From Epithemia pelagica (Eukaryota > Protista > Bacillariophyta), in contig OX337233.1 in NCBI GenBank assembly GCA_946965045.2, positions 3,162,001 to 3,226,000 on the forward strand: a DNA stretch of 64,000 nucleotides, written 5' to 3'. Below the pieces are notes generated by a model. The model had not been told where the DNA came from. It saw only the letters and a list, made by a program, of their open reading frames with translations, and searched no databases. Each line of letters opens with the position of its first letter. Positions within the stretch are counted from its first letter, which is position 1. The position numbers and the translations under genes are program-made. This document shows, in pieces, positions 28,539 through 60,695 of the stretch.

Positions 28539-28821
28539 GATGTCGTTTATGTCTTTTGATGTCGTTTGATGTCGTTTGATGTCGTTTGATGTCGTTTGAT
28601 GTTTTTATCGCCAAAAGAATCTCTACTCTCCAGCAGTTCATATTATTCAACAGAAAAAACACGACTTACTGACGTTAGGCCCATGGCGAAAGACATTTCA
28701 AAAGGCCCATATGAGCACCGCTTGATTTTGACTCAAACCATGTTTCCGCGCGAGCCCGAAACGACATCAAACGACATCAAACGACATCCCTCACGACATC
28801 AAACGACATCCCTCACGACAT
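28539..28821. repeat. Inverted decamer arrays (GATGTCGTTT)n at 28539-28606 and (AAACGACATC)n at 28759-28821
   Basis: Exact reverse-complement units separated by ~150 bp. Confidence 0.9.
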
Positions 28822-29156: not shown

Positions 29157-32100
29157 ATGAGTGAAGAAGATCCAGACAAGAATGTCGAACTAGAAAAAGA
29201 AGAAGAAGAAGAAGAAGAAGAAGAAGAGGGCATGGAAGTCCAAGAACAGGCAGGTCCTCCTCCCGAAGAAGCACCCGAGACGTTGTCGTCGTCGAAGCAG
29301 CCGCAACAATGGGACAAGACCGAGATTCCTGTAGTTTCCTGGATGCGTCAATTCTCCTTTGTGGGACGCAAAAACTGGCTCTTGATTGTCCGACGACCCA
29401 TTTTGCTCGTCACCATGGTACGTGTTGGTTCGTTCAAAGTTGTTTTGTGAGTTTGTGTACCATCACAGGATGTTTGGCTCACAACTAATGCTATGGTCGT
29501 TTTCTGTGGTTCTTTTTTGTTATCTATTGATTAGCTCTTGAGTTCGGTCTTTTCCGTCTTGTTGGCGTGGAGTCAGGGAAGTGACGACACGGACAAAATG
29601 GATTTTGGTACAGTCCCCGTGGATACCTGTGGAACGGTCAATTACACCTTTTATGCACTCTATGACAATGGCACTCGTCGATCCTGGCAAGATCAAGAAC
29701 AAATTCCCCTTTCCTACAATGATGAATGGCGTGACGGCCAAAATGTGGCCATTATGGGTACGTAATGTGTGAATATCAAAAGGATATACTGTTCTTTTGT
29801 TGTTTTGTGAATATTGATAAGGATGGGAGCGAAGGATCCACCAAAATGACCGATAGTCTCATGGTCTGTTGTCTGTTTGTTACGATATACTGCCATGCTA
29901 CAGGTCTCGGCCCCTTGTTGTTGGCCATTTGTGTCTTTATCTACATGCAAATGGAGATTGAGACCAAAATGTTGGGTGTGCTGCGCGCCTTGGGCGTTCG
30001 AGAAAGTGTTTATTGGGTCAGTTGGTGGATTCCCTTTCTCATGATTTCCTTTGTCAATGCCATTTTGGGTGCCATTACGGCCAAGATTATTGAAAATGTC
30101 CACGTGTGGGCCGCCACCTCGTTTGGTCCCATTTTCGTTTCCCTCTTCTTCTTGAATGTAGCCCTGGTGGGCGGTTCCTTTTTGCTCGTGGCCGTGGCCG
30201 GTGGGACCAGGGCCTTGGCCGCCCTCTTTATCTTGGTCAACCGCCTGGATTCCCTATGCCGTCGTGTCTGGCAAGAGTGTCGTGTTGACCAGTCCAGGTT
30301 CCGTCAATGGTGGATGGAATAATCCACCCAATGGCTTGTTTTGGCTCAATGGCAATACGGTACGCCCTCATTTCTCTACGACGAGTATTCAATATGGATG
30401 TACAGCACACGGAGCATTAGGACTAACACCCTGCCTGTTTCTATCGCTCTTGCTCGTTATTTGTCTCTTTTTTTCAAAATAGTCCTATGCCACGACCAAT
30501 ACTATCCAAGATGAAAATTGGATCATTATTGGATACAATACCTCGTCGTGTCAAAGACCCCTCTTGTCCGAGTCGGAGGCGGAATTTTTGAAAACACCTG
30601 AAGAACGCATGGAAGTGTCGTCCGACGAATACTTTATGGGATGCTACTTCAATGCCGGATATTCCAGTTGGGCCTCCCTGGAGGTACGAACAACAGACCG
30701 CGCTGTTGGAGACTGCTGCTGCTGTGGTGATACTCACCATTGAATGTTTTCGTGATTGTTTTTCTATGATCAGAACGGTGGCTTTCTCAACTTTTTGTTG
30801 CATGCCATCCCGTACACGCAATTCATGTACACATGGGCCAACATTTTGGGATATACCGCCATGCATAATCGTGAATTTGAAATCAAACACATGTCCATGA
30901 GTGCCGAAACCTTGGCCCGTCGGGCCATCGATCCCTTGGACGAGGAGCTGAGTCAAGGAAGTTCCTTGTATTCGCAGGGTCCCATGTTGGATCGGTGGTC
31001 AGGTACCTCCGAGTATGACAGTTCCATCAATAATTGGCTCTTCAATTGTCCGGCCAGCAACCTTTCCGATGCCTTTTGTACGTCGTTAACGACATGCTAC
31101 GGGTCCACCGAAATTGACTCCTCCTTGACCAGTTCGGCCATGATTGGAGTGTTGCTAGCCTTCATGACCATTTATATGCTTCTGGGTGCCTACTGGATTC
31201 AAGTCTTTCCGAGTGGGGTAAGTGTCGATTGTCGATTCATGTGTTTGCAGTGTCTCTTGATAAGTTATTTTTCTATTGTCACCATGTCTAACCATCATCG
31301 CTGTGTGATCATTGAATGGGTATATGGTCGATTTTTCCGTCCTTTCTCAGAATGGAGCGGCTCAACCGTATTATTTCCCCTTTTTGAGCCGCTATTGGTT
31401 TGGTGGCGCACGGCCGAAACGAGATAATGTTCCTCATGGAGGAACCGGTGTGTCCACTTCTACCATTTCCAAGATTTATGGCGAAAACCATGCCGTAGAT
31501 TGTGTGGATGTTTCCTTGGCCGTGGGAGAAGTGACGGCTCTACTTGGTACGTCTCATGGAATCGTCCAATAGGGATGTCGGCGTAGTACTATGATACTCA
31601 CGGAAATTATGACTGTGAGCAGGGCATAATGGAGCTGGCAAAACAACTCTTTCTCATATGCTTTGTTGCGAAACGGAGCCCAGTGATGGATCTGCCTCGA
31701 TTTTCGGACTCTCGGCATCCAAGGACAAGTTTGTGGTCCGACAGCTGGTGGGTGTCTGCAAACAAGACGACTACTTGTACCCCAATTTGTCCGCGCGAGA
31801 ACACCTTGAGTTGTTTGGAGGACTTCGTGGCGTTCCGGATGCCGATCTTGGAGGTATGGTTCAGAAATGGCTCGAAAGTGTCGATCTCGATCTGGTTCAG
31901 AATGGTCATGCTGGTGGCTACTCTGGAGGTATGAAGAGACGCCTCTCTGTCGCTTGTTCGGTACGTACTAATATGCAGAACAGGATGTCCGGTATTTGAT
32001 GCTGTAATGTTGTGTTCTCATTCGATTGCAAATAGACGATTGGTGACAGACCCTTTATTGTTTTGGACGAGCCAACCACAGGAATGGATCCAGTCTCGCG

Positions 32101-35100
32101 TCGCTTTGTTTGGAAGCACATTGACAGCATCAAAGACGGACGAGTTGTCCTCTTGGTAAGTTCGAAGCAAAGCATTCACTTTCTCTGGATAGACCTATTT
32201 GTATCGCTCACTCACGGTGTTCCCTGAATAATTTTTTCAGACAACACATGCAATGGAAGAGGCTGATCTCTTGGCTGACACGGTTGTCATTATGCGCAAG
32301 GGCCAAGTCGCAGCTTGTGGATCCCCACTGCAGCTCAAGACTGAACACGGGTCGTCTCTCCAGTTTTCGCTCTTGGTTGACCAGGAAGATATCGATCGCA
32401 CCATCGAGCTTATTCGCGAACGATTTGCTGGAGTGGAAGAGTGGGTAGACATTCAACCTAGTGGCACTGGAAATGTGACAGTCGCAATCTCCAAGATTCA
32501 AGGGGAAGCCGCCAGCTCCAGGAGTGTGGCGTCTCCCGGAGGAGTCGATGTCGAACGACGCGCTGATTTTGCGTCCTTTTTGGAAAGTGGTGCATCGGGT
32601 GTACGGGAATATGGTTTTTCAAACAGTTCCCTTGAAGAAGTCTTTCTCAAAGTCACGGAAGGTGACGAAGAAGAGTCTCAAGAGACGGATGACGAGCAAA
32701 AAGAAGACTCTGTTGACTTGAAGGCATCAGATACAGAAACAGGAGAGAAGGAAGATGATGCCCTTTCCCTCGTTATTGACGATAATGCGACAGGTGGAAT
32801 TGGATCCTTCGAATCCAAGTTGACCGTGAAGGGTCAGCTTGTAGCTCTCCTCAAGTTCATGGTCATTCGCGATTGGACAGGACGAAGTTCCATCGCTAAC
32901 TGGATCACACATTGTGTACTTTTATGTCTCTCTGTTTTCCTTGCAATCAAAGCAGCAGAGAATACAGAAGCAAGTGCTATTCTTGTGTTGGTTGTGTTCA
33001 CATTGACAGTTACTTTGCTGACAGTGGGAACGCCAATTTACTACGAACGATTCTCCGGTCTTTTCTACTTGACCCGATCCCAGGGACTGCTGAAACCGGC
33101 CTACGTTTCATCCCAAGTCATTTACAGCTACGTTTTGTCCTTCGTTTTCACGTTTGTCGTGTTAAGTCTCGTCTATGCCACATCACTCTTCCGAGACCCT
33201 GAACTCTGTGAAGCCAACTATGAACAACCTTCATCACGATGTAACTGGTCGTACGGTGATCGTCGACAGATCAATTGGCCATCTTCGATCTACTGGTGGA
33301 ATCCTCCTGAATATGAGGGGGAGTATGTAAGACTTTATGCCCGTCGTACTCCTGGTCATTACGGTCTGATTCTGGGCATTATTGCAATTTTTCCATTGAC
33401 CATGCCAGGAAGCTTGTTTTCCAGTACTCATTTCCCTGGATTCAAACTTGCAGTTACAGTGCTGACAGTTCTCGTTTTGGGCATTAGCATTTTGCCGCTG
33501 ATACTATACGATGCTTTCAATGGAAAGGGTGTAGATGAAGAGCAGGAGTGTTTCTGGGATATTTGCAATACAACGTATTACGGCAACGAAACGACCTTGG
33601 ACGGGGAAGAATTTCTGAATTGCATCGGTCTTTGGGTGAATGATGGTCAGTCAGGCGCTTTGTGCATTCCCAAAGCGGCTGGCATTGCACCACAAATTGG
33701 CTTGTTTCAGACACTCTACATGACTTTAATGTCTGACATCACCTTCCATTCGACGCCACCTGAATACGTGGAAGAAAAATTGATCCCAATGTTATCTGGA
33801 GATTACGACTGCAACGGTTCCACCTGTCAGTTCCCGTATGCACGCGAGCAATACAGTGGGTTCATTGGCTATATGGTTCTTGGGGCTGTCCTTTTGACTG
33901 GTTTCGGATTCATGTTGCTATCCGTTCTCTCTTACCCAGGTAAGCGAGTTCAGCAGTTGAAGGCATCCGTGAGCAATTGGTTTGGGAACATGTTGCATCC
34001 TTGTCGACGCAATCGTTCCTCCACCACCACAAGCCCCGATGACACGGACAAAACCGAGAATGTATCAAAGGAGGTACTGGAGGAGACAAAGGCGGTTGAG
34101 GACTTGGTTGGTTCCTTTGTTCTTTCCGAGAATGATGGAACGCAGAATGTGGTGGCCAAGATTGCTGATTATGAAGCCATTCCCCGTGACGACATACCCC
34201 CGGTCGTCTCGTACAAACTGCGTAAAGAATATCGTCTACCCGGTGGTTTTGCCACCAAGTTGGCATTGGAGTCACTCGACTTGCATGTATCCAAAGGCCA
34301 GGTGCTTGGTTTGCTCGGAAAGAACGGCGCCGGTAAGAGTACGGCTCTCAAGATTTTCTCGGGTGGCCACGAAGCGTCTGCGGGTGTTGCCTTGGTCGCC
34401 GGTTATGACATTGGCATGGAACAGATTCAAGCCTTTGAACGATTGGGAAATTGTGCACAATTTGATGTCATTTGGCCTTGGGAAACCATCCAGTCCCATT
34501 TGGAATTTTTCGGTGGACTCAAAGGATTGCCCAAGGACCGTCTGGCCGATATTGCTCGTGCCGTTGCCTCTTCCGTGGGTCTTGGGGCCCCGGAAGTTTA
34601 CACTCGACGTGCGGGAGCTCTTTCGGGTGGTATGCGCAGACGTTTGTCGATTGCGATTTCCTTGATTGGTGCTCCGCGTGTTCTTCTCCTGGACGAGCCC
34701 AGTAAGTGTCATTTCGCTCATGATGTATCGTGTGTATTGTGGTATCTCTGTTGTACTCATGGCCTTTTCCCTTGTGAACAAATTGCAGCCACTGGATTGG
34801 ATCCGTCGACTCGAAACAACATCTGGAACCTCATTGGGTCATTCGCCACGGAAGAACGCGCCAGCATTATCAGTAAGTCTCATCCACTACTGGTATATTC
34901 ACGTCTCCCAATCTTTCTCGTGTGGTTCACGGCTCTCACGGACGGCTCGTTCCATGCCTCTTCTCTTCTTGTTTTTTTTTTTCGACAGCCACACACATGA
35001 TGTTGGAAGCCGATTCCTTGTGCAACCGAATTGCTATCATGGCCCAGGGGAACTTGAAAACCATTGGGAGTCAGCAGTGGCTCAAGGACACGTACGGTTC

Positions 35101-35383
35101 GGGGTATTTGTTGCAACTCAACTTGATTCGAAGTGACGAAGATACACAGAATCAGGCATTGGAGTTTGTCCGCACTCACTTGCACCCCGATGCGGTCATT
35201 TTGTCCCGTCAAGCCAAGACACTCCAAGTGGCCTTGCCCAAGAATGGTGGTGGAAGCGATGTGAGTCTGTCGGATGTCTTTCGTGTCCTTTACAGCGAAA
35301 AACGATACGAAGAGGGTCAAATCAATCAATTCTTGTTTGCGCAGTCCTCGTTGGAAGATGTCTTTGTGGCTCTCGGAGAATGA
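29157..35383 (+). pseudogene. Full-size ABCA-family transporter copy 1 (11 exons), apparent frameshift at ~30239
   Basis: TMD-NBD-TMD-NBD; GHNGAGKTT, YSGGMKRRL, LDEPTTG, GKNGAGKST, LSGGMRRRL, SLEDVF. Introns 29418-29534, 29758-29903, 30360-30482, 30684-30773, 31218-31350, 31547-31622, 31961-32035, 32156-32240, 34702-34788, 34873-34988. Exon 3 changes frame relative to copy 2. Confidence 0.75.
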
Positions 35384-35909
35384 GAGCGGGCTTTGTCCAT
35401 GTGTGTGTGTATGCGTGCTTGAGAGTCATGGGAAGTAGATACGAATGAGTAATGGTAATTCTATTATTATGTGGATGACATGCAATTCTACATAGAAATG
35501 ACATCCAGGACACGCAGCCCAGTCGGCAAATCGAAATACCGACGACGTGCGTTGCTGCAATAGTTGCTTCTTGCGCGAGACAGGGGTTGGAGCAATGCAG
35601 AATCAAGATTACCATTTGAATGTATGTCGCTTTGTGACTTCTTGCGCTTCGTCTTTTAGTAGACTATCTATCAATATCTATTGCGTTGTGATCCGATAGT
35701 GTTGAATGGAAACGATCATTGAATCATCATTTCAGGAGACGGAAGACAAAAAACAACCTGCGGTGATCCAGGTTTGGTGGTGTAACGCCTGATTCAGCTG
35801 AGCTAGTAAGGACCTCCGGCGTCAGCCTTGGCGTTTATTTCTTATCATGTCGGTCCTGTCGGTTGTTCGTTTCCAAAACTCTCATTCTGATATAGCTCCA
35901 GGCTGTTTC

Positions 35910-37718
35910 TTAGCGGGAGTGTGCCCAGGCCCCCGCTAGAGGCATGTCACGATCTTTGAGCTCTATGTCAAAATTAGGCATGTTAGGATTGGGTTCCAAT
36001 TCTCCTTTCTCAACCTTTTCGCAGAATGACTCCCATGACGACGCGTTCGATTCATCGGTGGGTTGGAAAAGCCGCATGACCTGCCCTAGCGAGAACCAGT
36101 CGTGACTCGTTTCCGGCTGTATCAGTGATGACTCGTCACCATTTTCTTCGATACGATGGATCATGTTGTCAACGTCTGGATGTCTCGTTCCATCTTGAGA
36201 TATCGCATTGAATGTTGAAGGATACCGTTCAGCCCGAACAAAATCAAAGTCGATGATACTCCCACAACTTAGCAGATTCGCAAGGCGAATATCCCCATGG
36301 GGTCCGAAATTATCATGAAGACGTCGTAGTTTTCGAATGATTTCCTGAAAAACCTCAGTACTCACATCGTTCTTCCAGTCACTTGAAATCCACTTCATTT
36401 TAACAATCTCCAGTTGATTGTCGTTGGAAATCAAGAGCTCGGCATTCTCATCAAGTAGCATCCGAACCACATCGATATTCGGCTTTCGATGTTGGGCCAT
36501 GTCGTCGTCATAGACCTTGTAAACAAACTCGTCAATCTTACCAACCACCGGGCCCAGGCGGCTGCCATAGTGTTCCAGTCTCGAAGGAAAGCTTTCTTGT
36601 GCCGCTACAAGACCGCGCGCCACCATCACAATCGCTTCCGCACCGCGGCCCACGTAGAGAGGCGACGTTTCCCACACATGTGATTGTTTGGTGAATTCCG
36701 CCGGGACGAGACCATATGCCGACACGGTCCAATGTTCCAGATCGTTGGCCCCGGCAATGTCAATGACAATGCATGGTTTCTGGTGGAGAATGAGAATGTT
36801 GCTCCCGACCATGTCCGCTCGGGCTTTCCGTTCCGTCTCTGGGATACCGCTGGGCTTGTATTGACATGCCGCCAAGACACACGCCCCAAGTGTTTTTTCT
36901 GGATGGACAAACCATGCGCACATGTCGATTTGTTGATCCAGAGATTTCGTATCTTCCACTGGTTTCGATTTAAATTTTTCGGTTTCCCTCTTTCTCTTGC
37001 GAATGATTTCAAACTCTTGAGGAGCACTGTCTGGACGTTCCATGTTGGTCACAAGATGCAGCTGATGCGTGACTCTCAAGCGCATCGGGTCCGTGGTATC
37101 CCGGTCGTGCTGCAGCAAGTCGATGGCCAGTCGAAACAGCTCCGACCCTACCGCTGACTGCGAGGCTTCGTCATCATCCGGGTATGAATTGTGGAACAAG
37201 GAGTGTTTCTTTGTGGAGCCGACCGCCAGGACTTTTTCCAGCTTGGCCACTTGGTCGACGACGCGGTCCTTTTGTTCCAACGGTTCAAACTCTCGAGCGG
37301 CCAGGACAAAGTCCAGATAACACTTGTGGGCAATAAATCCGCCCCGACAGGGATCCTCCGCCACCTGCTTGTTTCGAAATTCGGCACGGAGCGTGGGATC
37401 CTTGGCCACTTCGGAGACACTCTGGACCAAATAGTGCTGTTGGTTCGATTTTTTTTGCGGAGGAGCGATTACCAAAAGAGGGTTGGGGCCCGTTGTATCC
37501 GTCGGGATGGGATCGTACGGCTCGAGTTGTTCGTGGGCTGTGTCATTTGCCGCAAACACCTGGAGCTGTGGAGCATCCATGTTCTTGAGCATGTTCGAGG
37601 AACTGTTCTTGATGGCCTCTTTCAGATCATCCACACAAGCATTATCTTGCAGGTCTGCTTTGCTGACGACCGTCGATTCACCAGCGGTAAGCTTGTACCA
37701 GACACGTACTTTCGACAT
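35910..37718 (-). CDS. Crinkler-like protein 1: ubiquitin-like header + REase-like domain + kinase-like domain
   Basis: Header VRVWYKL...ACVDDLKEAIK...DAPQLQVF...PLLVIAP; QIDM...ACQYKP (PD-(D/E)xK-like, QxK); VYKVY, HGDIRLAN, IIDFDF, RHPD, HDWFSL; basic patch RKRKR. Confidence 0.75.
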   Translation of the reverse strand: MSKVRVWYKLTAGESTVVSKADLQDNACVDDLKEAIKNSSSNMLKNMDAPQLQVFAANDTAHEQLEPYDPIPTDTTGPNPLLVIAPPQKKSNQQHYLVQSVSEVAKDPTLRAEFRNKQVAEDPCRGGFIAHKCYLDFVLAAREFEPLEQKDRVVDQVAKLEKVLAVGSTKKHSLFHNSYPDDDEASQSAVGSELFRLAIDLLQHDRDTTDPMRLRVTHQLHLVTNMERPDSAPQEFEIIRKRKRETEKFKSKPVEDTKSLDQQIDMCAWFVHPEKTLGACVLAACQYKPSGIPETERKARADMVGSNILILHQKPCIVIDIAGANDLEHWTVSAYGLVPAEFTKQSHVWETSPLYVGRGAEAIVMVARGLVAAQESFPSRLEHYGSRLGPVVGKIDEFVYKVYDDDMAQHRKPNIDVVRMLLDENAELLISNDNQLEIVKMKWISSDWKNDVSTEVFQEIIRKLRRLHDNFGPHGDIRLANLLSCGSIIDFDFVRAERYPSTFNAISQDGTRHPDVDNMIHRIEENGDESSLIQPETSHDWFSLGQVMRLFQPTDESNASSWESFCEKVEKGELEPNPNMPNFDIELKDRDMPLAGAWAHSR

Positions 37719-37913
37719 GGTGCTTGGATCTCATGGGACGAAGAACAAGGGAATGGAATTCCCTTGCTCTTTGGGGTTTTCTTGAAGAGGATGCTGAGGA
37801 GTATTCCCCAGAGAGTGAGGGGTGAGTCCAGGTCGCCGTTGGGTGAGGATCTTCGATTTACGCTGGAAAGGCGGCCGCGGAAGGAGTAAGGTACTCTCTA
37901 AGATGACTCTAGG
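37444..37913. repeat. ~470-bp duplicated block (Crinkler header coding + 195 bp upstream), copy A
   Basis: Highly similar to 39391-39860; similarity ends abruptly after the VIAP(P)QKKS codons and after GATGACTCTAGG. Confidence 0.95.
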
Positions 37914-38264
37914 AACCACTCCCCTTCTACCATCGCAGTTTTTGAAGAGCATACCAACCGCAAAAGTAATCGAAAAGAGAAAGCGAGTAAGTCTCCTGTT
38001 CATGATTGCTCAAAGAAACCACAAAAGTGATTGAACACGCAACTATACGGTTGGCCGTTACGACGAAGTATCTGATCGTTATGAAAAGGTGAGGAGACGA
38101 AGCAATGTTGGCGATGAGTTGAGGAATCAGGGAACAGGGAGAATTTTCTTTGAGGAAAAGCAGAAACAAAATGGAATGGGTTAGCCAATAGGTCGGCCGA
38201 GAACCGAGAAAGCGTATTGCTTTCAGTTTTTGATCGGGTTGTTGTGAACATAGACAGGGCTTGT

Positions 38265-39665
38265 TTACCCTACCAACCTCCATGACTGCAGGGCATTTTG
38301 ATAATTCCAAAGGAGACATTTCTCCAAAATCTCAGCAGCTTCCACTTCGTACAAGTTAGCAGAATTTGACCAGCATTCACTAAGGTCGTCGACACCAGGA
38401 ATGGCTGTCACAAGGATAGTGTCCCCGTCCTCAGACTCCTCCGTAACGAGAGTATTTTTGTTATTCTTGGGATAGAATATTTGAACATCAGCCCCCGATA
38501 TCGTCCACCGATCGTTTGGGTATTTGTAGAGAGCCGCGCCTTTTTCAAGCTTGTTTAAAATAGCCTCTGCAATTTCATTCCTGTTAAATACCAACTCCAA
38601 TGGGATAATGTAGTAATGGCATTCGTCAATGATACAGGTGGAAAATTCAGTGTTGGCATTTCGCAAAGGCCTAATCGCAAAGGACTGCACTGTTTTCCGT
38701 CGCTTTCCTCTTCCCCGTCCAGTTCCATCAAAGTTCAGATGGACATCTCTACTCAACGCAAGGCGGTTGAAGTCGGGTGTATCAAGCCATTCATACACTC
38801 CGTGACATTTGGCACTGGGGAAGATGTGAGCTGATTCCGCCTCAGCCAACGTGAAAGAAGCACTGTTCTCAATCCGTTGAAATCGAAAAGTGGTGTCTTT
38901 TATTGATAGAAGGGTGACATCCATTGTGAAGTCGCTTGATCGAGTATCCAATATCATGTCTACAAGAGGCGAACCCGGTTCCGCTTCTCCATTTTGTGGT
39001 TCGGAGTGAGTCTTTAGAACCATGTTTTCGACTGTCACTGGAAAGGGGTCAATTTCTGATAAGGTCAAGTCCCGCACGATGTTCTGTTGGTCGTCCACCA
39101 GCTGTAAATCCCCGTTGTTGCGAAGAATATAAGCCTTCAAGTTGTCCACAAAATAGCCAGCCCGTAAAACCTTGCTAAACACCACAGAAAACTTAATGAT
39201 CGAACGATTGAACGGGTCACTATCACTCGCCTCTGTGACAAAAGCCGTATTTGCATCTAGATCTGGTGGATATAATCCTTTAAGAGAAGACGCCAATTTG
39301 AACAGCTCGTAACGGGCACCAGCGTGGGTTTTTGGTCGAGATATTGCCCCGGAGACCTTGCACCAGCGACTTGGTTGTTGCGAAAGCGGTTTCGATTTTT
39401 TTTGCGGAGCGATTACCAAAAGAGGGTTGGGGCCCGTTGTATCCGTCGGGATGGGATCGTACGGCTCGAGTTGTTCGTGGGTGGTGCCGCCTGCCGCAAA
39501 CACCTGGAGCTGTGCAGCATCAATCTTCTTGAGCATGTTCGAGGAACTGTTCTTGATGGCCTGTTTCAGATCATCCACACAAGCATCCTCTGGCAGGTCT
39601 GCTTTGCTTGACACCGTCGATTCACCAGCGGTAAGCTTGTACCAGACACGTATTACTTTGGACAT
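38265..39665 (-). CDS. Crinkler-like protein 2: ubiquitin-like header + intermediate domain + HNH-like nuclease
   Basis: Same header as protein 1; FQRIE...ESAHIFP...FNRLALSRDVHLNFDG matches the HNH_2-type pattern AHI.P...N.l.L...H..FD; basic patch GRGKRRK. Confidence 0.75.
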   Translation of the reverse strand: MSKVIRVWYKLTAGESTVSSKADLPEDACVDDLKQAIKNSSSNMLKKIDAAQLQVFAAGGTTHEQLEPYDPIPTDTTGPNPLLVIAPQKKSKPLSQQPSRWCKVSGAISRPKTHAGARYELFKLASSLKGLYPPDLDANTAFVTEASDSDPFNRSIIKFSVVFSKVLRAGYFVDNLKAYILRNNGDLQLVDDQQNIVRDLTLSEIDPFPVTVENMVLKTHSEPQNGEAEPGSPLVDMILDTRSSDFTMDVTLLSIKDTTFRFQRIENSASFTLAEAESAHIFPSAKCHGVYEWLDTPDFNRLALSRDVHLNFDGTGRGRGKRRKTVQSFAIRPLRNANTEFSTCIIDECHYYIIPLELVFNRNEIAEAILNKLEKGAALYKYPNDRWTISGADVQIFYPKNNKNTLVTEESEDGDTILVTAIPGVDDLSECWSNSANLYEVEAAEILEKCLLWNYQNALQSWRLVG

Positions 39666-39860
39666 GGTGCTTGGATCTCATGGGACGAAGAACAAGGGAA
39701 TGGAATTCCCTTGCTCTTTGGGAGTTTCTTGAAGAGGATGCTGAGGAGTATTCCCCAGAGAGTGAGGGGTGAGTCCAGGTCGCCGTTGGGTGAGGATCTT
39801 CGATCTGCGCTGGAAAGGCGGCCGCGGAAGGAGTAAGGTACTCTCTAAGATGACTCTAGG
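39391..39860. repeat. ~470-bp duplicated block, copy B
   Basis: See 37444-37913. Confidence 0.95.
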
Positions 39861-40025: not shown

Positions 40026-41964
40026 ATGATAGGGGGACGGTTTCCTCCTCGTCGAGGCCGAAAGTCCTTGAACAGCAATGCTACATCTTCTTCTTCTTCT
40101 TCTTGTTGGAGTACTATTACTACGAGACGACTGTCATCAACTCAAGTGTTGTTGGTCCTGGTGTTGATTCCAGCCCTTCTCTTGACGGTTGTTTCGGTGC
40201 ACCTCCTGGAGGATCCCCCGAATGTCAATCCTCCAATCCAACCAACCACCCCATCACCACACTCCTCGTCGTCATCATCATCATCGTCGTCGTGTGTGTC
40301 CGAGCCTGTGGTGATTTCCAATCATACGATTCGGTTGCACGAACGACCCTGCCAACCCATTACGGTGGCCTATGCCATTTCTCTCATCAAGGTACGTACG
40401 TTCGTACGTATATATAGGTTTGGGTTGGAACGGTCGATGGATGCGGCCGTGTGTGGCACTCTCTCTCATGGGATCTCTCCCCCTCTCCGTTTGCTCCACA
40501 TGTGCATTTCTTGTGGTTGGTTGTTCTTGGTTTGTAATGGGCCTCGTTTGGTTTACACTTATGCTGTGTGCGTGTTTGGTTGGAACAATGGCTTTGTCCG
40601 TTTTGGTTGTGTTCCTTTTGTTGGTTGAATGGTTGGTTGAAATGGTTGTGGATTCTATTATATTATTATTCTAGTGCGGCGACTTTCAATCGACTCCGGA
40701 AGGCTTGGTGGATGCGGCCTTGGTGATGCGACATTCGATTCATCAGACCAGTTCCCGGGTGGGAGCTTCCCTGTACGATTATAAAATATATGCCTTGATT
40801 CATCCCGATGCCGTGCCTTGCAGTTCCGTCTTGAAAGATGCCGGCTTTGAACTGATTGTGAAACCACGACCGGTCGAAGTCTCGGAGATTCGGGGCAGTG
40901 ACTTGCGACGGACCATTCACAAGGAATGGTGTTGTGGACACGATGAATTCATCAAACTCTATGCCTACAATAGCATCCCGGAACCCATTGTCATTCATGT
41001 GGATATTGACTTTATCTTTCACCAACCCATGGATCATGTCTTGGATGCCTTGTTGTATCACAAGGATTCCCCCATTGGTCAAGCGGCTCGTCGCCGCATG
41101 GAACGGGAACGACCCACGGATCCTTGGCCGGACGAACCCCAAGCCGTCCTGACGCGCGATTGGCCGCAAGTGTATCCGGGTCGGATTCCAGGATACCAAG
41201 CGGGCTTTATTGCTTTGCGGCCCAATCCACGCGTCTTTGACGAATTGGTGGAGATTATCAAAGAGGGTCAGTATTCCGAAGGCAATCATCGGGAAAATGG
41301 CTGGGGCGACAAGGGCTATGGGGGTTATGTGGGCGCCCGTGCCATGCAAGGCTTGATTGCCTACTATTACGATCAATGGGCTCCCGATACCTGGGTCGAA
41401 TTGAATCAATGTCGGTACAATCACATGGGCGTGGTCGTCACCTTTAGTCCCGGCACGTTTGGCTTTCGGGCCGGACACCCCCGGGCCGGCAAGTGCCGCA
41501 ATGGCAGAGACGTGTGTGAAGATTGCCCAACGACCAATGTGTCGTCCATTTACAATATTCATTATACGCAATGCAAAAAACCGTGGAATTGCATTGGCAC
41601 GGGCGATTCCACCTTGGGCGCCGTGAGTCGTCAAAAGGTTCCCAAACATGTGCGCAACAAACTCATTCCCGAAGGCTTGGTCCATTTACATCATTGTTTG
41701 GAATTGATGCAGGTTTGGCATTCGATTCGAACCGATTTGGAAGTCCAACTCCACCACGAGTGGATCGGCCGTCACCACGACACGAACCAAACGAATGGAA
41801 CGCACGAACTTGCCCAAGGACAACGGGGAACCTACAAGACCAACGTCTTTCAAGGACATTGTGCCAGCAATGGTGATTATTTAACCCTGGCCAATGGCCA
41901 TGCACCTACCTTGAAGCTCATTGCCGAACTTTACAAACCAAAGGAACAGAAAAATGGTCTGTAA
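40026..41964 (+). CDS. GT8-like family A, copy 2; exons 40026-40391, 40675-41964
   Basis: TM anchor; same motifs and same intron position as copy 1 (intron 40392-40674). Confidence 0.8.
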
Positions 41965-42157
41965 TACTAGAATCCACTCGAACCACGCCGGTGGATGCGT
42001 TGCTTGGGCCGCCGTGTGGGAGGAACCGTTGGAAAAAAGTATCCAATTCTACACTCTACACGAGTTTCGAAACAATCACATGAATCTATATCGGATACGA
42101 TTCACCTTGTTCTAACACATGTATACTATTCGTCACGGGGGGTTCTTTCTCACGTTT

Positions 42158-45100
42158 TCATTCTCCCATGGCCACAAACACGTCTTCCAGGGACGATTGC
42201 GAAAACAAGAATTGGTTAATGTTGCCATATTCAAACCGCTCGGCGCTGTACAGCACACGAAAGATATCCGCCAAGCTCACGTTGGCATGGTGTGGACGAT
42301 TCTCTTCTTCTTTTTGTTCGTGTGGAGAATGATGGCGGTCCGTGTCATTCATGGGTCGTCGGGGCAAGGCAATGTGCAAGGTTTTGGCTTGTCGGGTTTG
42401 AATCACAGCGCCGGGATGCAGCTTGGTGCGGACAAATTCCAAGGCTCGATCTTGAGTTTGCGCATCTCTGTGAGTCAAATTCAACTGCAACAAAAAGCCG
42501 GACCCATAGGTATCCTTGAGCCACTGCTGTGTCCCAATGGTTTTCAATTGACCGTGCGCCATAATGGCAATGCGGTTACAGAGCGTGTCCGCTTCCAACA
42601 TCATGTGAGTGGCTGCAAACACACACACACGCAAGACAGAGCAACGGGGGGTCAGAAAGCAGGACTCGGTGTGATGAATGCAGGAAGCACCCACGACACC
42701 ACTTACTAATGACAATGGCGCGATCTTGGGTACCAAAGGATCCAATCAACTCCCATATCGTGTTTCGAGTGGACGGATCCAATCCGGTGGCTGTTTTTCG
42801 TGATGGAACAGAGAAATGGAAAATTTGACATGAGACACTGGTCGAAAAGTTTTGGATCAAGAAATATTGGTGAGCAGTACTTACTTGGCTCATCAAGGAA
42901 CAGCACGCTTGGTGCACCAATCAGGGAAATAGCAATGGAAAGACGACGGCGCATACCACCCGACAATTGTCCGGCCAGGCGATTGTATACTTCTGGAGCG
43001 CCCAGGCCGACAGAAGAAGCCACGGCAAGAGCAATTTCCGAAAGACGGTCCATGGGCAGCCCTTTGAGACCACCAAAGAATTCCAAATGGACCTTAACAC
43101 TTTCGAAGGGCCAAATGACGTCAAACTGGGCACAGTTTCCCAATCGCTCAAAGGCCTGAATTTGCTCCACACCAATATCGTATCCGGCGACCAAGGCAAT
43201 GCCGGAAGATGCCTCATGTCCTCCCGCGAAAATCTTGAGTGCCGTACTCTTTCCTGCCCCATTCTTTCCCAGCAAGCCCAGAACCTGCCCCTTGGGAACG
43301 TGCAAGTCGAAGGAATCCAAAGCCACCTTTGTAGACAATCCACTGGGTAGTACGTATTCCTTGTGCAACTTGTAAGCCACAACTTGAGGAAGTTCTTCCC
43401 GCGGAATGGCTTCATAGTCATGGATATGAACGGCTGCGTCCTCTGATTCATCTTCGGTGTTAACAAATGACTTGACCAAGTTACGGACCGTATCAGACTC
43501 ATTCGATACTTCTTGAGCTCTGACGGAATTGCCTTCGTTCTTACTGGAAGCGGTTGCGGTCGACATGCATCGAAAGGGGTTCAAAGATTTGCTCACAAAG
43601 TTCCGGAGAGAAGCCTTCCACTTCTGAACTGTCTTTCCAGGATAGGATAGGATTGAAACGAGCACAAACCCAAGAACAGCCAAAGCAATAGCCCCAAGTA
43701 CCATGTAGCCAATGAAGCCTTTGTATAGGTCTTGGGCGTACGGGAACTGACATGTGTTTCCGCTGCAGTCGTAGTCGCCGGTCAGCATTGGAATGAGTTT
43801 GTTTTCAACGTACTCTGGGGGGTCTGAAGTGAAGGTAATTTCAGATATGAGACTCATGTAGAGTCCCTGATACGTGCCCATTTGCGGGAGAAGGCCTGCA
43901 ACCGTTGGGATACAAAAGGCCCCCGATGGCCCCGTGTGTGTATCGAGCCCAACACAGTTCAAGAAGGTTTCGCCGTCTACACTCGATTCATTTCCATAAA
44001 AGGTCGTGTTGCAAATGTCCCACTCGCACTCCTGAAGTCTGTTCGGTTTGCGCGAGCTGAACAGTTCGGACAAAACCCAAGGGATAATGGTAACGATAAG
44101 GACAATGAGAGCCAAGAGTGTGATACCAATTTTGAAACCGGGTAAATGTGAACTGGCAAGCACACTTCCAGGTATCGTTAAGGGAAGTGCGGCCATAATC
44201 CCTACCATAAGACCATAGTGTCCTGGGGTGTGTCGAGCATATAGCTGAACGCTTTGGCCCTCGTATTCGTCACTCCACCACTCTACCAATGGGACCTCTT
44301 CCATTTTGTGCCTGTCTCCGAACTTCCATTTACATTGGTCACCATCGTCTTCCGCATCGCAGACTTCAGACATGCGAAATAGAGGCGTGGCGAAAACGAA
44401 ACTCAGAACCAAAAAGGTGAACAACAGCGAGACACAATACGAGTAAACTGCCTGTGCCGAGATATGTGCCGTCTTGAGCGTTCCTTGAGCTCGAGTCAAA
44501 TAAAAGAGACCGGAATAGCGCTCATGATAAATTGGCGTCATAATCGTCAACAAGGGAAGAAACAAGGTGAAAACAATCAAAATGAGCACACCTCCAAACT
44601 CCAAGTAATGCGTGCTGTTGATTGCAATAATGACCGAAAGAAACAAAAAGACACCGAGTGTCAACCAATTGGACAACGAACTCTTTCCAACCCAATCACG
44701 GATAATCATAAACTTGAGAAACGCCTTCAACTGCCGTTTCACCGTCAATTTGGGTTGAAAGGAACCGATTCCATTCATGGCGTTCTCGTCGATTGTGACG
44801 GCCAACGCATCATTTTGCTCGTCCTCCAGACTTTGTTCTGGATCTGGGCTATCTCCATTGCTGGTCCGCATTGTCTGGGTTTCTTCTTCGTTTTCACCTC
44901 TTGTCACTTTCAAAAAGACCTCTTCGAGCGAACTATTGGAGAAACCATACTCGCGTACACCTGAATCGCTGCTGTCCAAGAACGCAGCGAATTGGACCAA
45001 GGTTTCAACGTCTACCCCATCATCAGAGACATCACCGGGTTTAAGACCCATCGATTCATCACGAACCTTTGTTATGGCAACCGTCACATTTCCAGTGCCT

Positions 45101-48100
45101 CCCTGTTGAACATCGACCCACTCCTCTTGCCCGGCGAATCGTTGATGAATCAATCCAACAGTGCGATCCAAGTCTTCGGGTTCGACAAGCAACGTGAACT
45201 GTAGGGAGGAACCATGCCCTGTCTTCAGTTGAAGTGGGGATCCACTGGCAGCAACATCGCCCTTTCGCATAATAACGACTGTATCTGCAAGCAAGTCGGC
45301 TTCTTCCATGGCGTGTGTAGTCTTGTGCACATAAAGGACGAAAGCAAAAGAGATTGCATGTGAGAAAAATAGAGACAAAGACTCCAGGGATCATATGGGA
45401 ACGTACCAGCAGTACAACCCTGCCTTCTTTAATACTATCGATATGCTTCCAAACAAAACGACGCGAAACTGGATCCATCCCAGTTGTTGGCTCGTCCAAA
45501 ACAATAAATGGCCTTTCTCCAATTGTCTGTCGTTGAGCCAGAAAAAATGAAATACTTGAGCTCTGCTATCATCACGTTGTATAGAAGCACACGAAGGACC
45601 AACTTGCAACACTTACCGAACAAGCCACTGACAGACGCCTCTTCATTCCTCCCGAGAATCCTGAACTATATCCGTCTTGAACGAGGTCAAGATCTACACT
45701 TTCCAGCCATTTTTGTACCATGCTATCGAGATCCGCATCCGCAACCCCACGGAGCCCTGCATAGAGTTCGAGGTGCTCCCGCGCGGAAAGCTTGGGGTAC
45801 AAATAGTCATCCTGCTTACATACACCAATGAGCTGACGAACACTGTACTTGTCCTTCGAGGCAGAAAGCCCAAAGATGGAAGCGGATCCTTCGCTTGGTT
45901 CGGTCTCGCAAAAAAGCATATGGGACAGCGTTGTTTTCCCGGCACCGTTATGTCCTGTTGCATCATCGGAATAGCATCATTTTGAGGTGAGTGATCGCGT
46001 TATCAGACAGCGTGGTTGACTTCTAATTTCAGTTTGCTTACTGAGCAAGGCTGTGACTTCTCCCACAGCCAGAGAAACATCCACACAATTTACGGCATGA
46101 TTGTCTCCGTAACGTTTCGTTATAGAGGCTGTGGAAACTCCCGTTTCACCTTGAGATACCGCGTCTCGAATGGGCCTTGCCCCGCCAAACCACTAACGGC
46201 GAAGGAAAGGAAAGTACAGAGGCTGAGGAGCTCCATTCTGTAAAGAACAAACAAGGGAACAAACAACGACGAATCAAAATAAGAGGCGACTTTGTCGAAA
46301 CGAACGAGCCGTCGGATCAATCGCGTCACCCGTCCGATAGAACTTACCCCTCTGGGGAAAACTTGAATCCAATAAGCCGCGAGGCACGTGTACAGCGTCG
46401 AAAATGCAAGCAAGGTAGCAATCATTGCGCTATTGGAAGTTGATTCTGTTTCTTCAGACCCTTGGCATAAGAAAAGGCCTTCGCAAAACGCTTCGGACAA
46501 ATTTGCTGCCGGACAATTGGTGTACGAAATTTCTTCCACTGGATCCCACTCGGAACTAACCTCGAAAGTACGTACAGTGGTTCCTTGCTCATACAACGAG
46601 GTACCTTGGGCGTTTTCGGGGTCCAAAGGATCAATCGATCGACGAGCTAAAGTTTCGGCACTCATGGACATGTGCTTGAAGCCGAATTCGCGGTCTGGCA
46701 TCCCCGTGTAGCCCAAAAAGTTTCCCCACATGAGTAGAAAAGGTGTGTAAGGGATAGCGGCCAACGCAAACTTGGTGATTCCTTTTTCCTGGATAGAACG
46801 GAAAAGAGAAAGGGAAGAGCACATTGAGTTGGTCAAAAAGAAGCAGATGATGATCGGACACTGTCGAGAACTTACCTTGATAGACACGTAGCTTCCAAAT
46901 CCGGTGGCGAAGTAACATCCCAGAATGTATTCATCGGATGGGACTTCCAGGCGTTCCTCGGGCGTCTTTAGATTCTTGGCCTCGGAGAATGACATGAGCG
47001 GCTGGTCACATGTTTGGCGTTCCAATCCAACAAAAGTTCCATTGTCAAACTCACGACGGACAAAAGCATATGACTACGGACAGACAGAACATTTGAACAA
47101 TAATAATGAGTTGATACGGAACGCGCTCTGAAAGAACACTCAAATCGTTCCGGAACTTACCGTATTGCGGTTGACCCAGAATATTCCCACTGGTGTGCTG
47201 AGATAAGGGCGATTGACAACACCGGCATCGTAGGGAATGTCACTCTTGTTTACAACGACGATGAAGGGGCCCCATGGCGCAACGAGCATGATCATGATAA
47301 AAAGGGCCGCAAGTGATCGTGCGCCACCTGCCACTGCAACGAGGAGAAAGGAACATCCCACCAAGCCAATGTTGAGGAACAAAATCGAAACGAACAAAGG
47401 ACCAAATGATGTGGATTTGAAAACGTGGACATCATCAATGAGCTTGGCCGTCATTGCTCCCAACATTGCATTGACTGTGGAAATGAGAAGAAAGGGTATC
47501 CACCAGCTTGCCCAAAAGACACTTTCTCTCACACCCAGAGTTCGAAGCACTCCGAGCATTTTGGTCTCAATCTCTGGCTGTACAAAGAGATAGGCACAAA
47601 TTGCCAAAACCATTGGGCCCAAGGCTGTGAACAAGATCAAGAGGAGACATGCGATCAGAACGCGGTTGCAAACTTTCACCCACCACCTCATTTCCAAATC
47701 CACTTACCCACAACGGTGACATTGAATCCATCACGCCACGAATCATTGTAGGACATGGGAGTCTTGTCGTCCCAATCCCTTTCCAGGAAGTTTCCTTCTT
47801 CATCGTAGCGTTGAGACTCGTAGTACTCCCAAGTGACTGCTCCACACTCATCCAAGGGAATTTCGGAGAAATTTCCCACTTCACTGCCTCCCTCGTGAGT
47901 TCCCCAAGAAAGCAAAACGGAAATGATCGAACTCATTGTCTGTTTTGTGACAAAACTGTGAGAGACGATGATAAAAGCAGAGGAACACTTTTTGCCGCTT
48001 CGATAGAACACACACACGTACCATAACCGTAAGAAGAATGGGGCGTCGTGTCATCAAGAGGTAGTTTTTGCGAAGGACAAACGAGAGCTGCCGCAACCAT

Positions 48101-49316: not shown

Positions 49317-51199
49317 TCATGCATTCGTTGTGGTTGTGTTGGTTGTCGTTTCATTGATCGTGTTGGTGTTGGTGTCGTTGTTACTGCTCTTGTGATTCTT
49401 GACAATCGTGGCCCGATCCGTCCACTTGGCCATGTATCCCAGCGGCGACTCCTTCATGGTATGCAAATGACTGGAATCCCAATGGTCCAAATCCAATTCC
49501 ATCTTTAATTCGGTATTGAGTTGTTGCAATTCTTGAAACCACAATTTATAAAAGGAATGCGTTTTGAGTTTGTGCAAGGATTGTTGCCATGGTTTGCTGG
49601 AACCGGTAAAATGCATATAATCGCGGTAGGGGACAAAACATCGAAAATCGGTTTCATTGGTAAAGGGGGCATGACATCCGGGCATGGTGGCCAAGGGAGG
49701 CGTGGCATTGTGTCGCAAGTCCTCCAAGACATTCCAATTCTCTCCTTGTTTGTGGGGACGACGCATGGTACCATCCTTTGTCATGGTAGTGCTGCTCGCA
49801 TTGCCTGGAACCCAATGTTGCAACTTGTTTTTAATGACAATGGTGACATCCTGTTTGACAAATTTGGCCCAATAATACATCAAGCCTATAGATAGGATAG
49901 AGAAAACGCCGGGCAAAACCAACAGAGAAGCAAACGACAACGTGAGAACGCAGGCAAGTCTTGGTTTTTCGTGTCCTCAAACAAACAAATCATGTACCAA
50001 CCAGCCCAGAAATGGCTCCATGGGCGCAGCACTTTATGATCCGCACTCCATCATCCAACGGTTCACCACACACGAAACGTACCTTGATCGGAATGTCCGG
50101 CATGAAATCGCCACGTGGTTCCATTCTTGAGGACGGCTTCCCAGTAGTCCTGTTCCTTTTGAAAGTGGTAGCCCCATCCAAGTTTCCAATCAAAATGGGG
50201 ATAGGGCAACAATTTGCCCGCTTCATGTTGCGCATGCACCGCCGCTTGCCACGATTCCCAATCTCCGGGCAGCGGTTGGACCAAAAAGACTCCGGTATTG
50301 CAGGGTTCTCCTCGCGTCGCCACCATGACATTGGGACGTAGGATACCCTGAACACTGAGATGAAACCAATAATCCAAATTGACGAGTGGCACAATATCGG
50401 CATCCAAAAACAAGACGCGTTGATACATGGTCATTTGCAACAATCGAAATTTGCTATACACGACTTGGGCAAAGGATTCGTGGGCCGGTTGTTCCAATTC
50501 TTGAATGCGAATGTTGAGGGCCGTCAACCATTCCACGTCTTGTTCGGGCAAGGACGTGCGATTCGATTCGGGAGAAACTTGCGTCCAAATCCACACATCG
50601 GCCGTCGATCCCAAGCGTCGAAGGATGCGCGTGGCAATCAAAATATTGTACAAGAATCCCTTGTAGGCGGGTTGGTCCTCACGAATACCACCCAACACAA
50701 AGGCATAGGCATACGGTGAGGTTGGTGCTGGATATGGAGTGCCATTGAGAATCATCCTGTTGTCGGTGTTGGAAGAGGACGAGGATGTACCCGACACTGG
50801 CTCTGTGATTTGGTCCGTCTCCTTCCGAGGTTCCTCTTGTTGTTGTTCTTGTTGTGAAATGGTAACAACGGTGGATTCGACGTCCTCTTGTTTGGAGGGT
50901 GGAGGAACCAAGCCGTGAGAATCGACCGTACCGTGTTCGGATGGTGGCTTTGGTTTCCGCCGTACTTGGTTGGGACGACTCATGTCGTGGTAATAGTTCA
51001 TCTTTGTTTCGTGCGGATGATGGTTGTCGCCCGCATGACTGCTACTCGACACGAGTCCACTATGAATCCAAAACAGCAGCAACGATTGACACAGGTAGGC
51101 AATCAACAAAATCCATCCGGCCAAGACCCACAGAGGACGACTTTTGGTCCATGAAGTTGTCGCCGCCTTGGTGCTAGTCATGGTGGTTGTTTTTTTCAT
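49317..51199 (-). CDS. GT8-like glycosyltransferase family B, single domain; exons 51199-50083, 49885-49317 (561 aa)
   Basis: TM anchor; KFRLLQMTMYQRVLFLDADI, EPCNTGVF, SDQG|LMYYW, HFTGSSKPW; phase-1 intron 50082-49886. Confidence 0.8.
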
Positions 51200-51925
51200 G
51201 GGTGTTGTTGTCACTTGCTCCGTCTTCTTGTGTTCTTCTTGGTCCCCCTTCTTTCTTCTTTCGACACACTCGACAGGACCTTTGTGAGGAACGGCAGAGA
51301 AAAAGAGAGGGCCTCCACTTCTGTATATATGGTTGCCTGTTGGCTTGTTGTGTTGTTCTTTTGTCACTGTTGTCACACAAAGAGGTCTGACGAAATTTCG
51401 CGAGCAAAATGCCTCCACAAAGCTTACGCTCTAGCTTTCAAATACTATGAGAGAGTGAGGCCTCCAGAGCAAAGAGAAACAATTAAATATAAATGCGATC
51501 CAAAATTGACAAACAAGCTCTGGGAAGTGGTAAGATGAACGTGAGTCGCGACTGGTGACCGTACAACGGACATGGACGAATACTCATCCCACAACGGACA
51601 ACGGACACAATTCTCGATCCGTTGTCAGCGCCGGCCCACAGTCAGACAGCTCGAAGCGCAGGGCGTTGCTCCTTTCCCAACTATTTTTGGTATCGAGTTT
51701 TGCGGTGTGTTTTTGTTTGGTGTTCGTGGTCGTTCTACACACAGAACGACAGAAGGATGTCCTCTAGACATGCAATTCCTAGGATCGTATGTGCCTCATG
51801 ATTTAGTCTCTACTAACGGAAAAACGAACAAAAGGCTACCATAAATTCCAGCTACGAATCCAAAATTGTGTGTGGCGTTGTGTGGTTGTGGTCCACTGTT
51901 CTCTCGTTGTGATTGTTGCTCGCAA

Positions 51926-51926
<1 letters not shown>

Positions 51927-51962
<36 letters not shown>
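51927..51962. repeat. (AC)18 microsatellite
   Basis: Directly visible. Confidence 0.95.
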
Positions 51963-51964
<2 letters not shown>

Positions 51965-52093
51965 CGTGGATTGGTCGACAACCTCTCCGAGGTGGCCTTT
52001 TCCTCGCTCTAGAGGGCATCTGTTTTGGTTTCACCCACGTGGAACCTCTCAAGGATGCACCGTCAGGAACAAAACCAGAATATAGTTGTCGAA

Positions 52094-55000: not shown

Positions 55001-55667
55001 ACGCGAGGGAAATGTTGAGCGCGTGGACCCATTGAACCTGTTGATGGGTCCAAACCATTGTGGGTCGAGTCCACAACCACACGTCGGCCGTCGATCCCCA
55101 TGTGTGTTTCCACAAGTGTGTGGCAATGAGGATATTCCACAAGAGTCCGGGATCCATCTCGGCAGTGGGTACGACAAAGGCGTAGGCAAACGGCGACGAT
55201 GGTGAGTTGTGGCTGTTGGTGGACGACACAATGGCACTTGTTGTTGTCGTCGTGGTCCTTGTTGTATCTCGTTTCGGAGCGAGCTGTTCCCGTGGTGTGG
55301 CCTGGTCCACGACATTGTGGTTGTTGGAGACGAACGGGTGTGGTTCGGAGCTGTGAAAGGGAGCGGGTGGAGCATGAACTGTGGTGGTCCTTGTGGTTGT
55401 GGTTGTTCGGTGGGGTTGTTGTTCGGGAACCAACCATCCCACCAACAAGACTTGACTGGTGAGATTCCATCCCACGTAGGCATAACAAAATCGATGCAAC
55501 CACCACGCAATGGTGGTTGTTGTCGTTGTCGTTGTCGTTGTTGTTGTCGTCTTTTGTTTCTTCTTTTGAGGGAGGATTCGAGAAGCATGGTACTCGGGTG
55601 AACCACCACGAGTGGTGATTCTATTAGGATTCTTCGTCTTCTTGTGAATGGAGGAACGAGTGGTCAT
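52094..55667 (-). CDS. Tandem two-domain GT8-like family B protein; exons 55667-54578, 54423-53239, 53088-52094 (1089 aa)
   Basis: Both introns fall at DQG|LxYYW and the exon lengths (1090+1185+995 nt) keep frame. Exon 2 carries the C-half of domain 1 fused to the N-half of domain 2. Confidence 0.8.
52200..52530 (-). repeat. Coding ~48-54-bp repeat giving an Asn/Ser/Thr/Asp-rich tail
   Basis: Alternating NNNDNxTLxSNSTNSS / NNKNDxTTxDSNSTxS units. Confidence 0.85.
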
Positions 55668-60567: not shown

Positions 60568-60579
60568 ACTTGTAGCGGT

Positions 60580-60695
60580 GACACCTGCAATATTTCGAGT
60601 GTTGTGGTTCTCATTTGGTGTACCAGAGAGCATATTGGACACCTGCAATATTTCGAGTGTTGTGGTTCTCATTTGGTGTACCAGAGAGCATATTG
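60580..60695. repeat. Perfect 58-bp tandem duplication just after the stop of GT31-like copy 5
   Basis: GACACCTGCAATATTTCG...GCATATTG at 60580 and 60638. Confidence 0.95.

Follow-up and report, generated by a model that had tools for sequence, protein, structure and literature searches.

Tandem genes of probable Crinkler-RHS type in the diatom Epithemia pelagica share a header and carry exchangeable C-terminal tips

A 64,000-nucleotide (nt) stretch of the genome of the diatom Epithemia pelagica (GenBank assembly GCA_946965045.2, contig OX337233.1, positions 3,162,001 to 3,226,000 of the forward strand; hereafter the window, whose first letter is position 1) carries two tandem minus-strand genes, A and B, which begin with the same 5' block and end in unrelated C-termini. 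We refer to the common N-terminal part as header 1 (H1) and to the two C-termini as tip A and tip B. Both genes are called in the European Nucleotide Archive assembly ERZ21939226 (contig ctg1293l), and both are single-exon. The interval 35910-39860 is bounded exactly by the gene A stop codon and the far end of the gene B 5' block, and is laid out as follows.

35910..37718, minus strand: gene A, coding sequence of 602 amino acids (aa), stop codon included in the coordinates; header 1 then tip A
37444..37913, minus strand: gene A 5' block, of which 37719-37913 is the common upstream part and 37446-37718 the Crinkler-like header
37914..39391, minus strand: tip-B cassette, the tip B coding region plus 350 nt of 3' flank
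38265..39665, minus strand: gene B, coding sequence of 466 aa, stop codon included in the coordinates; header 1 then tip B
39392..39860, minus strand: gene B 5' block, of which 39666-39860 is the common upstream or 5' untranslated part and 39392-39665 the ubiquitin-like (Ubl), Crinkler-like header (residues 1-91)

The common block was found as two pairs of direct repeats (37452-37708 with 39396-39652 at 92% identity, and 37707-37913 with 39654-39860 at 98%), which together make up one block of ~465 nt that starts ~195 nt upstream of each ATG. Upstream of the ATG (~195 nt) the two copies are 98% identical and across the first ~91 codons 92%, and a repeat of such length and identity is far beyond chance. 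When genes A and B were aligned, all similarity was gone a few nucleotides past the codons for PLLVIAP(P)QKKS; in gene B the header (residues 1-91) ends in PLLVIAP and a QKKS linker. An earlier reading of this DNA (the original prediction) had described a tandem minus-strand pair with ~470 bp in common, complete divergence after this motif and no signal peptide. Each of these points was borne out by the open reading frames (ORFs), the repeat and the alignment, and by the absence of a hydrophobic N-terminus in either protein on the Kyte-Doolittle scale (maximum 11-aa hydropathy of 0.29 and 0.62). The tip-B cassette begins at the header/tip linker and ends at the exact start of the gene A 5' block. 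The sole ORF between the two genes (37927-38319, 130 codons) lies in the 350-nt 3' flank of tip B, is of low complexity and looks like non-coding 3' flank, and on that account it was rejected as a candidate immunity gene. The 5' block also has, ~25-45 nt before each ATG (within 37719-37790 and 39666-39740), a perfect inverted repeat whose 9-nt halves stand 3 nt apart, as well as a short out-of-frame upstream ATG; both are candidate regulatory elements.

The header belongs to the Crinkler family by profile comparison. Against the curated cut-off of 24.6 bits for the Pfam family Crinkler (PF20147), the header of gene A alone scored 26.9 bits, full-length gene B 24.6 and full-length gene A 23.7. 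An exhaustive HMMER search with a 95-aa header query identified 75 cluster representatives at E <= 0.001, 73 of which fit a hidden Markov model built from eight headers; among the short members of this header family 27 of 37 matched PF20147 at E < 0.01 (best 3.1e-8), and scores of relatives on PF20147 reached 47.6 bits. A word-index search with the header alone, a method too insensitive here, returned only P0001, the allelic copy of gene A. Searches of PDB sequences with the header profile found only ubiquitin-like domains (MPE1, ISG15 and RAD23B), at non-significant E-values of 0.4-1. The AlphaFold models place a strand-strand-helix-strand arrangement before a disordered loop and a last strand formed by PLLVIA, the predicted local distance difference test score (pLDDT) for residues 1-50 being 69-84 in model B and lower in model A; this predicted topology would fit a beta-grasp-like fold. 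The named relatives of the header come from Nitzschia sp. Nitz4 and Cylindrotheca. In some relatives from other diatoms or metagenomes (P0117, P0121 and P0122) the tip is preceded by a tandem array of two or three Crinkler-like headers.

The end of the header matches the family as well, since 52 of the 78 header-family domains have a (P)LIVVAP-type end motif, the counterpart of the HVLVxxP junction motif of oomycete Crinklers (CRNs) (PMC5289972). On one header strand LQVFAA stands where oomycete CRNs have LxLFLAK (PMC5289972). The header is ~90 aa long and passes straight into the linker with no DWL-sized region before the junction; genes A and B therefore fail the strict oomycete CRN layout, and the header is better described as being of the Crinkler-RHS (CR) type than as an oomycete CRN N-terminus in the strict sense. 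The original prediction had proposed a Crinkler-like header with an HVLVxxP-type motif at the junction; the profile scores, the matching relatives and the beta-grasp-like predicted pattern agree with the first of these, and the motif counts, with breakpoints lying just past the motif (below), with the second.

We compared genes A and B with four further genes, all from the same assembly as the window (ERZ21939226), at the loci L001, L003 and L004. At L001, ~55 kb away on the same contig, P0019 has a second header (H2) followed by tip B. At L003, on another contig, P0003 has H2 followed by tip A, and 10 kb beyond it P0002 has a short third header (H3) followed by tip A; in other diatoms, four proteins of the tip-B family carry this last header type as well. 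The window locus has an allelic or homeologous counterpart, L004, which has the same neighbours and holds an H1-tip B and an H1-tip A gene (the latter P0001). A single assembly thus contains H1-tip A and H1-tip B in the window, H2-tip B, H2-tip A and H3-tip A. All six full genes are intact ORFs, with dN/dS of 0.33-0.75 in the pairs for which it could be computed. Among the three tip-B copies (38268-39391 against L004 and L001) there were 3-6 nt differences, all nonsynonymous, with 0 changes in ~251 synonymous sites, numbers that are too few for significance.

At the nucleotide level the similarity between these loci starts and stops at one place. From the header/tip junction onwards L001 is 99.6% identical to the window over 1478 nt (39391 down to 37914) behind a different header, and L001 and L004 share 5075 nt at 99.35% beginning at the same junction. 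L001 and L003 have H2 blocks of 97% identity across the 402 nt that lead up to the junction, after which L003 continues into a tip A that is 89.7% identical to that of the window. When the window is compared with L004, identity climbs from 94.5% upstream through ~97.5% for the 5' block to 99.4-99.6% for the tip-B cassette, and this rise indicates that the cassette was recently exchanged or homogenised. All of the similarity breakpoints fall within the linker just past the header with the reading frame kept, which argues for recent cassette exchange. In addition, directly behind the stop codon of the H2-tip A gene of L003 there is a headerless tip-B-family fragment (11860-12318), which is limited to the first ~150 residues, with 65% identity to P0071; insertion of tip A at the junction, with displacement of an older tip, would be expected to leave such a remnant. 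The unit that passes from header to header is a cassette of tip plus 3' flank, and such transfers are recent in this genome; the expectation that the end of the header would be a swap point in a diversifying system was thus upheld by the other header-tip combinations and by the breakpoints at the junction. In L004 (5367-9894) and L001 (11822-15409) tip B is followed by ~4.5 kb that hold a Cupin_8-like gene and a gene for a 701-aa RsmB-F-like methyltransferase; this segment is missing from the window, where the full 5' block of gene A abuts the cassette.

Similar mixing was seen among relatives elsewhere. Of 52 relatives with an N-terminal extension, eight have an H1-type header, two have H2 and the rest have other header types; most tip relatives carry non-Ubl headers, and at least three header classes are present on both tip A and tip B. 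Conversely, headers of the H1-type family precede other tips besides A and B, including an HNH_2 domain (P0090, 36.5 bits), an AAA/P-loop domain (P0147), DUF5898 (P0146) and unknown tips of large size (P0084, P0119 and, from Nitzschia sp. Nitz4, P0122).

Within the two tips we delimited four regions.

36699..37172, minus strand: PD-(D/E)xK (restriction endonuclease, REase)-like region of tip A, residues ~183-340, from motif and predicted topology
35949..36566, minus strand: protein-kinase-like domain of tip A, residues ~385-590
39051..39365, minus strand: N-terminal ferredoxin-like (PII/ABM-like) domain of tip B, residues ~101-205, from model and Foldseek
38721..38840, minus strand: HNH_2-like beta-beta-alpha-metal core of tip B, residues ~276-315, strand-strand-helix

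Tip A is a C-terminus of ~510 aa belonging to a family of at least 18 diatom proteins. Its kinase-like domain has, in the family alignment, a Gly-rich loop, the Lys of a YKVY motif, an invariant HGD...N catalytic loop and a DFD motif; Foldseek searches with the gene A model matched BMPR2, IRAK4, ACVR2A and other kinases with probabilities up to 0.97 (E 0.03-0.2), and the Pfam family Pkinase was matched at E 0.005 by one relative and at E 0.14 by gene A. There was also a weak PDB match to the catalytic loop of CDK11, which serves as a lead only. The region before the kinase-like domain is predicted to fold as helix-strand-strand-strand-helix-strand; an Asp is conserved at the second strand and the third contains an (E)YK/xYK motif, so that the N-terminal half of tip A would be PD-(D/E)xK-like in its predicted pattern. 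The original prediction of a REase-like plus kinase-like tip thus found support for the kinase, through its invariant catalytic loop, DFD motif, Foldseek kinases and weak Pkinase matches, and less so for the REase part, which is assigned from motif and predicted topology with no database match. Gene A and its allelic copy P0001 end earlier than most relatives and do not have their basic C-terminal tail.

Tip B is a C-terminus of ~375 aa from a larger diatom family (61 matches, nearly all via tip B), and the AlphaFold model of gene B has a mean pLDDT of 82.6. Its ferredoxin-like domain gave PII-like and ABM-like Foldseek matches with probabilities up to 1.0 and a TM-score to target of 0.7, at E >= 0.03. 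In the downstream core, His280 and Asn300 are invariant and His309 is nearly so among 45 relatives, and nine of these 45 family members match HNH_2 (PF13391) below its cut-off (e.g., 17.6 bits against 21). At the level of the family, therefore, the HNH-like assignment made for tip B by the original prediction was retained. PDB sequence and profile searches of both tips returned nothing significant; a weak match to phage baseplate ORF16 is again only a lead. An hhalign comparison of the tip-B family with P0090, which combines a Crinkler header with a bona fide HNH_2, found no match, an uninformative result with a single-sequence template.

The named relatives of tips A and B are all from diatoms (Nitzschia, Cylindrotheca fusiformis, Grammatophora, Seminavis robusta and Attheya), in keeping with the free-living alga that had been assumed as host, and at the sensitivity used both tip families appear to be diatom-restricted. 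Judged by these best matches alone, the source would be a raphid pennate diatom near the Bacillariaceae. Relatives are present in MMETSP and Trinity transcriptomes, which indicates that the family is transcribed.

Taking the header, the junction and the cassettes together, we think it likely that genes A and B, which lie in tandem, belong to a diatom family of CR-type modular effector or toxin-like genes. Each gene would consist of a portable 5' module (~195 nt plus the ~90-aa header), a Gln/Lys-rich linker, an enzymatic tip and the tip's own 3' flank; 5' modules and tip cassettes (tip plus 3' flank) recombine in frame in the linker, by non-allelic recombination or gene conversion. Tip A would pair a PD-(D/E)xK-like nuclease fold with a kinase-like domain, and tip B a ferredoxin-like domain with an HNH_2-type core. 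Going by the literature on CR proteins and polymorphic toxins, the tips would act on nucleic acids, mainly DNA, in biological conflict, with the header serving trafficking or regulation and the kinase perhaps acting as regulator of the nucleic-acid-directed tip, as has been proposed for CR proteins.

The CR class was defined by Zhang, Burroughs, Vidal, Iyer and Aravind in 2016 and, as summarised in PMC5289972 and PMC12957317, a role in inter-organismal conflict has been proposed for its members. CR proteins have a Ubl header and no true signal peptide, their tips include REase plus kinase and HNH, and recombination occurs at the HVLVxxP-type motif (PMC5289972); roughly one CR tip in six is of the REase plus kinase type, and HNH nucleases also occur (PMC5289972). 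The locus shows the same header family, junction motif and multiple tips per header. Like CR effectors, genes A and B have an N-terminal header, predicted to be Ubl, without a true signal peptide, and variable, probably enzymatic C-termini; unlike them, they are found in a diatom and their tip relatives sit mostly on non-Ubl headers. Our literature search, which did not cover the taxon list of Zhang et al. 2016, found no diatom-encoded CR members. While the free-living host put forward by the original prediction holds, the setting is less novel than was implied, because CR proteins are already known from free-living eukaryotes according to accounts that cite Zhang et al. 2016 (PMC5289972, PMC12957317). 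For the CR field the locus would be confirmation in a new lineage, not a new principle.

Oomycete CRNs, whose diversification proceeds by gene duplication and fragment recombination (PMC3726527, PMC5289972), resemble genes A and B in the header-family match, in the LQVFAA/LxLFLAK position, in a hydrophobic-run-plus-Pro motif that is both header end and recombination point, and probably in having kinase (Phytophthora CRN8-type) and HNH-like (Aphanomyces AeCRN13) tips. They differ in that genes A and B have no DWL domain before the junction and a host that is not pathogenic.

Several results weigh against the CR-type assignment or parts of it. H2 is only 23% identical to H1 (pairwise E 6e-4) and has no Pfam Crinkler match. 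The REase region of tip A found no Pfam or Foldseek support; the top Foldseek matches of the full-length gene A model were to a mitoribosomal protein at a root-mean-square deviation of 17-20 Å, followed by kinases. Further, the acidic position of its (D/E)xK motif (36852-36863) is Gln in gene A, P0002 and P0003, whereas it is Glu in 12 of 16 tip-A relatives including the allelic copy P0001, so from the residue at this position the putative nuclease of gene A may be weak or inactive. Gene B on its own matched HNH_2 only at E 0.13, over the same stretch as its relatives, and Foldseek found no HNH structure for the gene B model, only the ferredoxin-like matches; from the sub-cut-off family matches, this E-value and the conserved residues, tip B is likely HNH-like but unproven. 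All matches of the full-length gene A and gene B models against the PDB had Foldseek E-values above 0.001. No sequence link of tips A and B to oomycete CRN tips turned up, although no search was aimed at one. None of the four loci has a conserved immunity-like neighbour, the upstream genes of ~415 aa being unrelated at three loci.

The same architecture could serve another role, and we regard it as possible, though less likely than not, that these proteins work inside the diatom's own cells as executors of immunity or cell death, triggered for example by viruses or parasites, with the Ubl header as a regulatory or adaptor module. Crinkler-type Ubl domains are found at the N-termini of fungal NLR immune receptors (PMC9815663), and a Crinkler-like protein that acts within its own free-living host, AACRNL, is known (PMC12957317), so that in both cases Crinkler-type modules work within non-pathogenic organisms; genes A and B differ from these in having no NLR architecture (NACHT/NB-ARC plus repeats) and no ADP-ribosyltransferase domain. 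The missing signal peptides and adjacent immunity gene would also suit intracellular executors, as would the expression of related genes in transcriptomes of unialgal cultures. Against this, a signal peptide is also missing as a rule in delivered CR effectors (PMC5289972), and no sensor domain or partner gene is conserved beside the loci; the proteins may be self-acting or delivered.

The exchange of cassettes also recalls bacteria. Bacterial polymorphic toxin loci (Rhs, CDI) have a constant N-terminal part, swappable C-terminal toxin cassettes and displaced orphan tips. The diatom loci are like them in their constant N-terminus and swappable tips and in the headerless fragment behind the complete gene of L003, and unlike them in having no adjacent immunity gene and no secretion-system context, and in being eukaryotic with a single-gene organisation; the analogy is one of diversification mechanism, not homology. 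As a speculation that we consider rather unlikely, diatoms might run a eukaryotic counterpart of Rhs/CDI-type cassettes, in which a pool of tips, including silent orphans, is shuffled behind several headers on a population time-scale, to tell kin or strains apart or to counter parasites and viruses. If so, the near-identical tip-B cassette at three loci would be the recent sweep of a favoured tip.

That the cassettes are selfish and transposon-derived, spreading by nuclease- or transposon-linked duplication without benefit to the diatom, seems to us improbable. In its favour are a tip-B cassette that is at least 99.4% identical at three loci with flanks of 94-97%, the Copia-type elements that L001 and L003 have at a distance of 3-5 kb from their CR genes, and the view that the CR class stems from transposon components (PMC5289972); a Crinkler-like selfish element has also been described (PMC12957317). 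However, there is no transposase, terminal repeat or target-site duplication at the cassette flanks, the breakpoints lie in a coding linker with the frame kept, the ORFs are intact with dN/dS below 1, and both tip families are conserved across distant diatoms. Still more remote is the view that A and B are ordinary DNA-repair or signalling paralogues with an N-terminus held in common through local tandem duplication and no conflict system, since, although the genes are adjacent and paralogue arrays and segmental duplications abound in the window, tandem duplication leaves unexplained why unrelated C-termini are joined on at a single point, why these tips recur elsewhere behind two other headers and why there is an orphan tip, and the header matches the Crinkler family.

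As members of a CR-type family, genes A and B would place in a raphid pennate diatom an actively recombining Crinkler-type family with nuclease- and kinase-like tips. Its record of diversification is unusually clean: at least five header-tip combinations in one genome, linker breakpoints resolved to the base, a cassette that follows two unrelated headers at 99.6% identity, and an orphan tip. Diatoms rank among the major primary producers, and their molecular weapons against parasites, viruses, bacteria and each other are little known; for diatom biology these would be candidate conflict or cell-death genes that are now annotated as hypothetical proteins.

In the rest of the window the neighbours of the pair are eukaryotic (a RING-finger protein and ABC transporters), and no other CR fragments were found outside 35856-39700. 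Together with a 419-aa gene the pair lies inside the 6.8-kb centre of an inverted segmental duplication, and the layout of L004 is alike. The arms are as follows.

29700..35390, no strand assigned: left arm of the inverted segmental duplication, including an ABC-transporter gene at 32253-35000 (plus strand)
42150..47760, no strand assigned: right arm, including an ABC-transporter gene at 42706-45378 (minus strand)

The arms are 70-82% identical in pieces, and the ABC-transporter paralogues share 62% aa identity. Being unrelated to each other at the three loci, the ~415-aa upstream genes were rejected as a conserved partner or immunity gene; with no conserved neighbour, and with only a low-complexity ORF in the 350-nt flank, the original remark that no obvious immunity gene adjoins the pair was accurate. 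At L001 (14958-21470) and L003 (14853-19619) the CR genes are followed, 3-5 kb downstream, by ORFs of Copia-type retrotransposons (RVT_2, gag_pre-integrs, zf-CCHC), and none were seen in the window itself.

The pair had also been placed inside a surface-glycan gene cluster, a description whose sole basis is the sub-threshold matches of neighbouring paralogues to Glyco_transf_8 and a pair of ORFs with a DxD-like motif. The former are two of four related ORFs at 50063-55667 (~22 bits against a cut-off of 24.3); the latter, at 40705-41964 and 11210-12460, are 64% identical, and one of them adjoins gene B. Six further paralogous ORFs of 413-560 aa, 44-67% identical and with no Pfam or PDB-sequence match, occupy 12852-21275 and 59152-62938. 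At 28558-28788 a 10-nt unit forms two short arrays that are inverted relative to each other and lie 160-170 nt apart.

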